Notes: generated from the letters alone by a model not told the origin. A stretch of 63,946 nucleotides of DNA, filler included, from Octopus bimaculoides (GCF_001194135.2; 8 parts of 7 records of this genome joined end to end with filler, not necessarily neighbours in it), one strand, 5' to 3'. Positions 19,830 to 21,518 are shown, counted from the first letter of the whole stretch. Numbers and translations: made by a program.

Positions 19830-21129
19830 TGAAAAGAAGCGGCTGGAATCTCCCCATGTCCTGATTAATGATACATCTAGTGATGGTGTCACAATAAAAA
19901 CACTGGTAATTGCGCAACCTGATAATCGCTGCCTCATATGAGTTACAATGAAAAAAACAAAATATTGTGAATAACGGTGGTAATGAAACTGAAGTCTTTG
20001 ATGGCGACAGTTTCACCCGGCAGTGTTTCACTTGGCAGGCTCAGAGATACTGGTGCGATTCCAGCCTGTCGATATCCAGAAAGGGGCCAGCACACACGGC
20101 GTAGATGGAACAAACAAGTCAATGTTGTGGTCATGGAGTGTTACTACCTGAGCAACCCTGTATACGAAAATGGTGTTTATATTAGGGGATACCGATAACG
20201 TATGTATGATCAATGGAGAAAAAGAGGATTGTTTCAACTCACGGAACAGTGATTATGTAATCAAGCTTAAACAATAAGAAAAATCGTTGGTTCACAGAAG
20301 TAGAGTTCGAAGCTATCAAGAGACGGGTATTGGAAAACAACAGCAGAGGAAACGATGAAAATACAGTTCCTACTGATAAAAGTAATCTCATAGCAGAAAA
20401 CAGAGGCGAAATCTCTAATAAACCACAGGAAAGGAACTGGGATAGCTTGCTCGATGAGAGACATATAGATGGTTTGGAAGAAGAAAATAAAACTATTGAT
20501 GACATGACAGATGGGCAAAAGGCAATTTACGACAGAAAGGTCGATCGGTGGAAATTGAAACAAAAATGTGAATGAAATTCTGAAATACATCAGAACAAAA
20601 AACACCACAGAAACAAATAATTTGATCAAGGTAGCAAGTATTGTTGTAGCAGAAAACATGGGTGTTGATGTCAAGAAAAAGAAATATAATGGGAGTGACA
20701 AAAGAAAAGATCCATGGTGGGAAAGAAGAATACAGGCGGGGTTAGATATGCTCTCGAAGGACATTTCTGTATTAGACCAAAAAGAGAAGGAGGAGCTTAA
20801 AACGAACAAAAATACAGGGCACTGAACAGGAAGTATGATATTGAAAGAAAGGGCCTGAAATTAGTAATGAAAGAACCGAAACAGCGCCTCATTGCAAAGA
20901 AAGCAAAGATAGTATGATACGACCAAAGAATGAAAGGATACCAGCAGAATACGTCATTCAGAGTAGATTAGAAAAGATTCTACAAAGAAATAAATGCAGA
21001 GTGTACAGATGAAAAGCTGTTACAAGATAACATTGAAAGGCAAAGGTTTTGGAGTGACATCTGGAGCAAAGACAAGGAGCACAGGAAGTATGCTGAATGG
21101 TTGCAAGAACTGAAACAAGCAATTGTCTG
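19830..21129 (+). mobile_element. Dong/R4-clade non-LTR retrotransposon, 5' part of ORF, decayed and 3'-truncated
   Basis: Frameshifted pieces RRRWNKQVNVVVMECYYLSNP..RGYR*RMYDQWRKRGLF, KDPWWERRIQ, KYDIERKGLKLVMKEPKQRLIAKKAK, QRFWSDIWSKDKEHRKYAEWLQELK are typical of the R4/Dong N-terminal region; begins after (AAT)7 at ~19810-19830. Confidence 0.8.
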
Positions 21130-21406
21130 TCATCTTCATTACGTCGGCGAGAAAGCTAAACACGAACGCGGAAAGGTACATGTCGGATGCCTTTAGACCA
21201 AATGTGTTTGTTCAGCTTTGTGTCAATACGAACGTCCTTGGTTCGCATCATCTTTTCAGCGAACAACTTGATCTTTTTTATGGCTTTTGGTGCCTTTTTC
21301 TTCAGCTTCACGCCATAGACTTTCTTGTGTAGATGAATGGTACATTCCTTAGTAATAAGATCATTCATAGAAGACTTCTTCCTCTCAAACTCTGCTTCGT
21401 CATCTT
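21130..21406 (-). pseudogene. RPL31: RPL31 processed pseudogene, inverted 5' segment (ATG to RRRNED)
   Basis: Intronless; ATG at 21403-21401, apparent 1-nt frameshift, then [84 protein letters not shown]; premature TAG at 21158-21156. Confidence 0.93.
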
Positions 21407-21518
21407 TCGCTGACGTAATGAAAATGAAGATTCACCACACAAACTCTACACACTTGTCTCTCATGTTCCATGTGCTCCTTTCAAAGGTCTTCAGACAATG
21501 AATGTAGAGAATGAATGA
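21407..21518 (+). pseudogene. RPL31: RPL31 processed pseudogene, non-inverted 3' segment (C-terminus)
   Basis: Plus strand reads [35 protein letters not shown] (TGA 21516-21518), the canonical L31 C-terminus (EDSPxKLYTLV...FKxLQTxNV). Too short for the ORF track. Confidence 0.92.

Follow-up and report, generated by a model that had tools for sequence, protein, structure and literature searches.

An eL31 (RPL31) pseudogene with an inverted 5' segment in Octopus bimaculoides and its resemblance to twin-primed gene copies

Introduction

Twin priming, which Ostertag and Kazazian reportedly introduced in 2001 for 5'-inverted products of L1, has been characterised almost only for this long interspersed nuclear element (LINE) of mammals. 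Endonuclease-independent L1 insertions associated with break repair were, reportedly, defined in mammalian cells and genomes by Morrish in 2002 and Sen in 2007. Octopus genomes are rich in active LINEs, which have been proposed as relevant to genome and brain evolution. Retrocopies of messenger RNAs (mRNAs) that L1 made with an inverted 5' end have been documented in humans (Kojima 2010, PMC2912911), and recently active L1-Tx1, CR1, RTE and Dong-R4 LINEs are described for Octopus vulgaris, with the Dong-R4 families abundant (PMC13282606). Here we analyse a stretch of 63,946 nucleotides (nt) from Octopus bimaculoides (GCF_001194135.2; eight parts of seven records of this genome joined end to end with filler, hereafter the window), in which the sequence of the ribosomal protein gene eL31 (RPL31) lies in two directly joined pieces on opposite strands, and we compare this arrangement with the products of these systems.

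Results

Reading and translation of the region revealed eL31 coding sequence on both strands of the window, from 21126-21404 (minus) and from 21405-21518 (plus), and the translated pieces were confirmed as Ribosomal_L31e (Pfam PF01198, E 4.7e-31). The best matches of the reconstructed protein are octopod eL31 proteins, with 96% identity to a cluster of Argonauta hians, Octopus sinensis and O. bimaculoides, and the protein search returned a second cephalopod eL31 cluster at 92% identity. At the nucleotide level, the copy is 92-97.5% identical to the eL31 genes of O. bimaculoides and O. sinensis (E <= 1e-117), which places the host in Octopus. We delimited the pieces by BLASTN and MAFFT against the eL31 genes annotated in O. 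bimaculoides (L003), O. sinensis (L002) and A. hians (L016) and against the Logan contig L001. The inverted piece (21130-21407, minus) comprises mRNA positions -4 to +275, with the ATG at 21403-21401, and extends through codon 92; read from 21407 to 21130, it corresponds to L003 2997-3275 (279 bases, 97.5% identity, E 2e-134). The forward piece (21407-21684, plus) corresponds to L003 3255-3534 (94% identity, E 2e-121) and runs from parent nt 255 (codon 85/86) to the stop codon at 21516-21518 and through a further 166 nt of 3' untranslated region (UTR). The first-pass annotation had ended the forward piece at 21518, which is the stop codon only; its description of an N-terminal part on the minus strand joined directly to a C-terminal part on the plus strand is borne out by both alignments. 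Alignment to the host gene, as it had suggested, fixes the junctions at 21129/21130 and 21404-21407 and the 3' end at 21684.

The two pieces partition the mRNA into positions -4 to 275 (inverted) and 255 to 534 (forward) and abut directly, with a 21-nt overlap as the only sequence common to both. This overlap (L003 3255-3275) is present twice, as the first reading had noticed: the left copy tcgccgacgtaatgaagatga (reverse complement of 21130-21150, minus strand, parent nt 255-275) does not differ from the parent, whereas the right copy tcgctgacgtaatgaaaatga (21407-21427, plus strand) carries two transitions. At the outer junction (21129/21130), parent nt 275 abuts the flank. At the inversion junction (21404-21407, within catCTTTcgc at 21401-21410), the pieces meet head to head, such that the reverse-complemented 5'UTR sequence 'aaag' is followed by parent nt 255; microhomology here amounts to 1 nt (T), or to 4 nt (cttt) only if a later 2-nt deletion is assumed. 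The positions of nt 275 and nt -4 agree with the earlier placement of the internal breakpoint at the outer junction and of the mRNA 5' end at the start of the forward piece. The 'few UTR nt' then reported before the ATG are present and number precisely four of about 14. The arrangement therefore has the layout of twin priming: the 5' segment is inverted and lies upstream, the internal breakpoint faces outward, the RNA 5' end lies inside, and 21 nt are duplicated. No flanking DNA was inverted along with the 5' piece, and the homology of both pieces is confined to the transcribed region, starting at -4 and ending inside the 3'UTR, with flanks that are unrelated to the parent locus and without a promoter.

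Three changes disable the reading frame. In the inverted piece, 1 nt is missing after codon 4 (near 21391/21392) and a stop codon takes the place of K83 (TAG, 21158-21156), alongside a V16L substitution, and one of the two transitions in the forward copy of the overlap turns R87 into a TGA stop (21411-21413). The eL31 sequence is a disabled extra copy, that is, a pseudogene, at a new locus. A 70-amino-acid (aa) open reading frame (ORF) within the inverted piece (21156-21368, minus) is present in UniRef as P0123; since P0123 is the window's own ORF, a pseudogene fragment has been deposited as a predicted protein.

The functional eL31 of octopods is an uninterrupted 366-nt coding sequence (CDS) at 3001-3366 of L003, L002 and L016, and in O. 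bimaculoides, O. sinensis and Argonauta hians it sits antisense within the bounds of a PRAME_C/LRR gene of 483 residues. An uninterrupted eL31 CDS was also found in ten contigs (L006-L015) of another cephalopod, and the eL31 gene of the gastropod Babylonia spans 3.2 kb. The octopod gene looks like an old retrogene that replaced an intron-bearing original, and this intronless, nested gene may be of equal interest to researchers of ribosomal genes and retrogenes. Octopus and Argonauta eL31 have in common a CTTTCT start preceded, at a distance of about 30 nt, by a TATAAA box, which points to a 5'UTR of about 14 nt. At the other end of the transcript, both genera have a conserved AATAAA-containing block, which begins about 30 nt (about 31) beyond the point at which the forward piece of the window copy stops.

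A second, colinear and intronless eL31 copy is present at a different locus in contig L001 (Logan, SRR16213285, ~745-1286). Its start lies no more than ~10 nt from the ATG, and its upstream flank has nothing in common with that of the parent. Derived substitutions of the O. bimaculoides type occur in the L001 copy, which also has two additional codons following the ATG (MIKAKQKF...), and the contig ends in ...aatcagaa, at most 4 nt from the point where the window copy ceases to match the parent. Since two independent eL31 copies begin where transcription does, a property of copies made from RNA, they provide the best available argument that the template would have been RNA. The designation of the window copy as a retrocopy in the first-pass annotation is thus supported by homology that begins inside the ~14-nt 5'UTR and by the start of the L001 copy, but not by intron loss, because an intronless parent makes the absence of introns uninformative on RNA versus DNA origin.

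To date the copy, we compared the sites that differ between the O. bimaculoides and O. sinensis eL31 genes, with Argonauta as outgroup. The window copy agrees with O. sinensis at a CpG site and at two 3'UTR positions but otherwise has the derived states of neither species, and it dates from around the split of the two lineages. Private changes affect 4 of 279 nt (1.4%) in the inverted piece versus 5 of ~245 nt (2.0%) in the forward piece, excluding a T-run, and the two pieces are therefore equally old. O. sinensis is closely related to O. vulgaris. The split between O. vulgaris and O. bimaculoides has been placed at 13-33 million years ago (PMC13282606).

The upstream flank, earlier treated as anonymous DNA, turned out to be a fragment of a non-LTR retrotransposon bearing a reverse transcriptase. 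This element (LINE-A, 19831-21118, plus) retains the 5'UTR and the first ~390 of ~1134 codons, degraded by frameshifts and stops; its 5' end is complete and its 3' side is cut exactly where the eL31 copy starts. Residues 15-388 of the L005 ORF (1133 residues) map to 20019-21118 by tblastn, and BLASTN gave 74% identity to a relative with homology ending at 21118 and additional 5'UTR similarity at 19877-19959. Full-length relatives have a single ORF of 1133 residues with RVT_1 at residues 474-723 (Pfam) and a C-terminal region with Cys/His residues plus 'RRPDI...D...K'; no Pfam match to an apurinic/apyrimidinic-type endonuclease (APE) was obtained in the full-length relative. The relatives L004 and L005 (ENA ERZ25066843, a 'metagenome' assembly evidently containing animal DNA) have (AAT)n tails and (AAT)n upstream flanks and lie head to tail in long contigs. 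On these features, the LINE-A family is probably Dong/R4-like, targeting (TAA)n and equipped with a restriction-like endonuclease (RLE). Sequence reading placed an (AAT)7 microsatellite (19810-19830, plus) immediately 5' of LINE-A, which would be the flank expected for a (TAA)n-targeting LINE whose relatives carry (AAT)n tails. Between the end of LINE homology and the eL31 start lie 11 nt, gcaattgtctg (21119-21129, plus), which match the LINE relative at 5 of 11 positions in the alignment; they might represent LINE sequence that has diverged, filler, or what is left of the eL31 5'UTR (ttgtctg vs ctttctg).

On the other side, Tandem Repeats Finder defined an (ATT)39 microsatellite (21681-21798, plus) in place of the remaining 3'UTR and the poly(A). 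The array starts in the copy as cagatATTaTCATT, where the parent reads cagaAATTgTTCATT, and the parent 3'UTR has AATTGTTCATT exactly at the array start. The array is T-rich on the sense strand, which rules out a decayed poly(A) tail. It is followed by a 5'-truncated tRNA-like octopus short interspersed nuclear element (SINE; 21800-21891, plus), of which the last ~77 nt and its own (ATT)5 tail are present and which was probably inserted into the (ATT)n array; other copies of this SINE are found at 25417-25487 (minus), 25213-25256 (minus) and 35567-35604 (plus). The next ~520 nt (21892-22416) resemble an abundant octopus repeat but had no BLAST match among the 17 fetched loci and are left unclassified. 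Then follows LINE-B (22417-22830, minus), a 5'-truncated 3' end with the C-terminal ~40 codons, 3'UTR and a degenerate (AAT)n tail, which by tblastn (22828 to 22706) and sequence reading belongs to the same LINE superfamily as LINE-A in opposite orientation, has (ATT)n arrays on its borders and is not the missing remainder of LINE-A. With its (ATT)n(GTT)n terminus, the whole interval (21681-22946) resembles an (ATT)n tract beside eL31 into which several insertions accumulated.

Further to the right, a 93-aa ORF (23040-23321, minus) has a signal-peptide-like hydrophobic N-terminus followed by a long Asp-rich run and could represent an exon or no more than a translated (GAT/GAC)n repeat, and a 105-aa ORF (26666-26983, minus) matches a helix-turn-helix domain (HTH_23) weakly and resembles what is left of the DNA-binding N-terminus of a Tc1/mariner-type transposase. 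Another LINE family is represented by a reverse-transcriptase fragment at 39685-40317 (minus; RVT_1, E 2.5e-15 by Pfam, ~27-32% identity in tblastn). Four runs of N interrupt this piece (26031-26040, 27972-28265, 29850-30505 and 38036-38880), the last of which (845 N) is directly followed by a LINE C-terminal fragment (38883-39065, plus). Long-range contiguity to the right of the eL31 copy in this gapped scaffold is therefore uncertain.

Discussion

We favour, with slightly better than even confidence, an origin of the split copy in a single round of reverse transcription, primed on one mRNA molecule by the two DNA ends of a break, either by twin priming or by an endonuclease-independent equivalent, i.e. 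by twin priming in the broad sense. A single chromosomal break would have exposed two primers for one eL31 mRNA. The right DNA end, in or beside the (ATT)n tract, would have found its priming site not in poly(A) but within the 3'UTR, at the AU-rich ...CAGAAAUUGUUCAUU, and its cDNA would have run leftward to about nt 255 to give the forward piece. The left DNA end, inside the Dong/R4-like LINE copy, would have primed internally at about nt 275 and been extended to within 10 nt of the cap to give the inverted piece. End-to-end joining of the two cDNAs, which overlap by 21 nt, would have followed with little or no microhomology, after which the copy would have decayed by a frameshift and two stop codons and the adjoining (ATT)n tract would have gained a SINE and a LINE fragment. 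The likeness between cagaAATTgTTCATT and cagatATTaTCATT is compatible with an (AAT)n DNA end priming on an AU-rich 3'UTR site. Candidate sources of the reverse transcriptase are L1-Tx1 elements or an (ATT)n-tailed LINE, both of which occur in Octopus; L1-Tx1 has recent insertions in O. vulgaris (PMC13282606), and no L1-clade LINE turned up in the octopus window. The twin priming proposed by the first-pass annotation is in part sustained by the geometry, the 21-nt duplication and the similar divergence of the two pieces, but not by a poly(A) tail, a target-site duplication or outer microhomology, all of which are absent. The missing tail, target-site duplication and target DNA suggest a break-associated, internally primed event rather than a canonical one with endonuclease cleavage and poly(A) priming, and we infer that the ~2.6 kb missing from LINE-A would represent a deletion of target DNA.

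Several observations weigh against this origin. First, the copy has no poly(A) tail at its 3' end, which stops at 21684 in (ATT)39, and the rest of the parent 3'UTR with the AATAAA region was not found anywhere in the window when up to 3 mismatches were allowed. Likewise, no stretch of 8 nt or more in the 40 nt preceding the insert recurs in the 2.5 kb downstream, and the 20-mer left of the insert has no further match in the whole window with at most 3 mismatches; the true 3' junction of the insert may be lost, which would bear on this search for a target-site duplication. These searches agree with the earlier remark that neither a tail, nor AATAAA, nor such a duplication is visible. Second, microhomology at the outer junction is 0 nt, or 3 nt ('tct') only on the assumption of a 1-nt insertion, whereas in humans ~95% of the L1 insertions with 5' inversion show microhomology at this junction and 4.6% do not, and short human elements are rarely 5'-inverted (one Alu and 4 of 477 SVA elements; PMC2912911). 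Third, the link between (ATT)n and the 3'UTR is an AT-rich similarity that is statistically not significant, and RNA origin is not proven by intron loss when the parent has no introns. Fourth, the remaining two thirds of LINE-A (~2.6 kb) were not found by tblastn in the 21 kb downstream, where the search gave only unrelated fragments (22828-22706, minus; 38883-39065, plus; 40317-39685, minus). Fifth, the mechanism is supported by one old, decayed locus in a gapped draft assembly: exact look-up of P0123 returned no second assembly or ortholog, three concatenated ORFs spanning both junctions had no match at E <= 0.001 in 5.8 billion proteins, and a 28-mer across the inversion junction had 0 matches in JGI metagenome contigs. 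Finally, ttgtctg (21123-21129) weakly resembles ctttctg, the missing start of the 5'UTR, which would fit a later inversion at the DNA level.

Such an inversion would have started from a colinear, near-full-length eL31 copy beside the LINE, whose first ~280 bp were inverted in place through staggered breaks or replication template switching, the inner breakpoint gaining a 21-bp duplication and the 5'UTR losing 3 nt. We regard it as unlikely. The heptanucleotide would then be a forward 5'UTR stub, and it agrees with ctttctg at 5 of 7 positions, including the last four exactly; the outer junction without microhomology is as such a rearrangement would leave it, and staggered-break inversions are known to produce short inverted duplications. 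The match is, however, short, post hoc and located in T/C-rich sequence, and the 11 nt that contain it match the LINE relative at 5 of 11 positions. The absence of poly(A) and of a target-site duplication is neutral. Both breakpoints would have to fall within a pseudogene of ~540 bp, and, since no flank was inverted with the 5' piece, one of them within ~10 nt of its 5' end. This would be a very rare coincidence, set against a retroposition mechanism that gives the same shape as a by-product.

The complete 5' end and cut 3' side of LINE-A bring up a different possibility, in which LINE-A is part of the insert and not its target. A LINE reverse transcriptase would have jumped serially from a SINE/(ATT)n RNA to the eL31 mRNA (534 to 255), then to the end of the eL31 cDNA (-4 to 275, sense) and lastly to LINE-A RNA, which it would have copied from codon ~388 to the 5' end. 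This multi-template chimera seems quite improbable to us, even though a LINE that is 5'-complete and 3'-cut has the form of the 5' partner in template-switch chimeras and never that of an ordinary LINE insertion. The lack of any LINE-A remainder in the 21 kb downstream would also be accounted for, R2-type (RLE-bearing) reverse transcriptases are known for template jumping, and recombination of LINE-1 with other RNAs is documented in mammals. Three or four jumps would nevertheless be required, among them one onto a DNA template and some that leave from internal positions and not from template ends, and the (AAT)7 directly upstream suggests that LINE-A is an ordinary (TAA)n-site insertion with its own 5' junction. 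Moreover, the junction ORFs have no relative among the proteins searched, and there is no sign of a chimeric family that propagates.

We consider it very improbable that parts of the intronless parent gene were copied from DNA during break repair or that the draft assembly joined two different eL31 copies. DNA and RNA copies of an intronless parent are alike internally, several eL31 copies exist in the genome (L001, L003), and the scaffold is of short-read style with its four internal N gaps. On the other hand, the homology stops inside the inferred ~14-nt 5'UTR, with no promoter or flank of the parent copied, the sequences that meet at the junctions have at most 4 nt in common, which argues against a k-mer mis-join, and the pieces are complementary rather than redundant, each with its own old mutations. 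Among the readings that were rejected, snap-back (hairpin) cDNA synthesis would yield a full inverted duplicate and is excluded because the pieces partition the RNA rather than duplicate it; two independent retrocopies are excluded because the inverted piece lacks the mRNA 3' end required of any target-primed copy, and independent insertions are not expected to break at the same mRNA position, as the two pieces do; and no set of breakpoints for a single larger DNA inversion restoring colinearity of LINE and eL31 gave the observed order when worked through by hand.

Priming from both ends of a break on one mRNA, which remains our preferred origin for this copy, would have consequences beyond the locus. 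We put forward tentatively, as a possibility that we would not yet call probable, that dual-end (twin) priming on cellular mRNA operates in octopods, here at an internal AU-rich site by (ATT)n. Gene copies that are 5'-inverted and tail-less would then come from a non-mammalian LINE, either L1-Tx1 or an (ATT)n-tailed element. If this were general, the 5'-inversion pathway would be an old property of target-primed reverse transcription and not a peculiarity of L1 or mammals, and any screen that relies on poly(A) and target-site duplications would systematically overlook octopus retrocopies. From an unambiguous 5'-inverted retrocopy it would follow that octopod reverse transcriptases use cellular mRNAs and can prime from both break ends, and such a copy would supply a simple sequence signature for genome-wide screening. 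One old, tail-less locus is a lead, a suggestive single case and not a demonstration. Of 106 papers that use the term 'twin priming', the 40 whose titles were listed concern mammalian L1, and none a cephalopod; a search on octopus and retrocopies found nothing relevant, and the paper on the non-L1 LINE ZfL2-2 (PMC2666801) does not mention inversion. With 5'-inverted retrocopies well known in humans, the locus would add a new lineage to a known type of product.

Three described systems serve for comparison. Like the 5'-inverted processed pseudogenes made by L1 in mammals, the octopus copy is disabled, devoid of a promoter and located at a new locus, with the 5' part inverted and the 3' part direct, the same breakpoint layout and a small (21 nt) duplication. 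Unlike them, it has neither poly(A) nor target-site duplication, is 3'-truncated in the 3'UTR, shows microhomology of 0 nt at the outer and 1 nt at the inner junction, derives from a short template (~0.6 kb) and resides in an octopus, for which there are candidate LINEs only. Template-switch chimeras such as U6-L1 and mRNA-L1 have, as here, a LINE 5' portion fused sharply to cellular mRNA sequence, but they keep one orientation throughout and end in poly(A), whereas in the octopus the middle part is inverted and the LINE has an (AAT)n upstream flank. Endonuclease-independent L1 insertions are without target-site duplication, frequently 3'-truncated without poly(A) and accompanied by loss of target DNA, and their junctions have short or no microhomology, as in the octopus copy. 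The latter shares with this class the absence of a target-site duplication and the tail-less 3' truncation and, if the missing part of LINE-A was deleted as we infer, the loss of target DNA; the class was defined for mammalian L1 itself, whereas for the octopus copy there are candidate enzymes, and a target deletion would follow from the missing two thirds of the flanking LINE.

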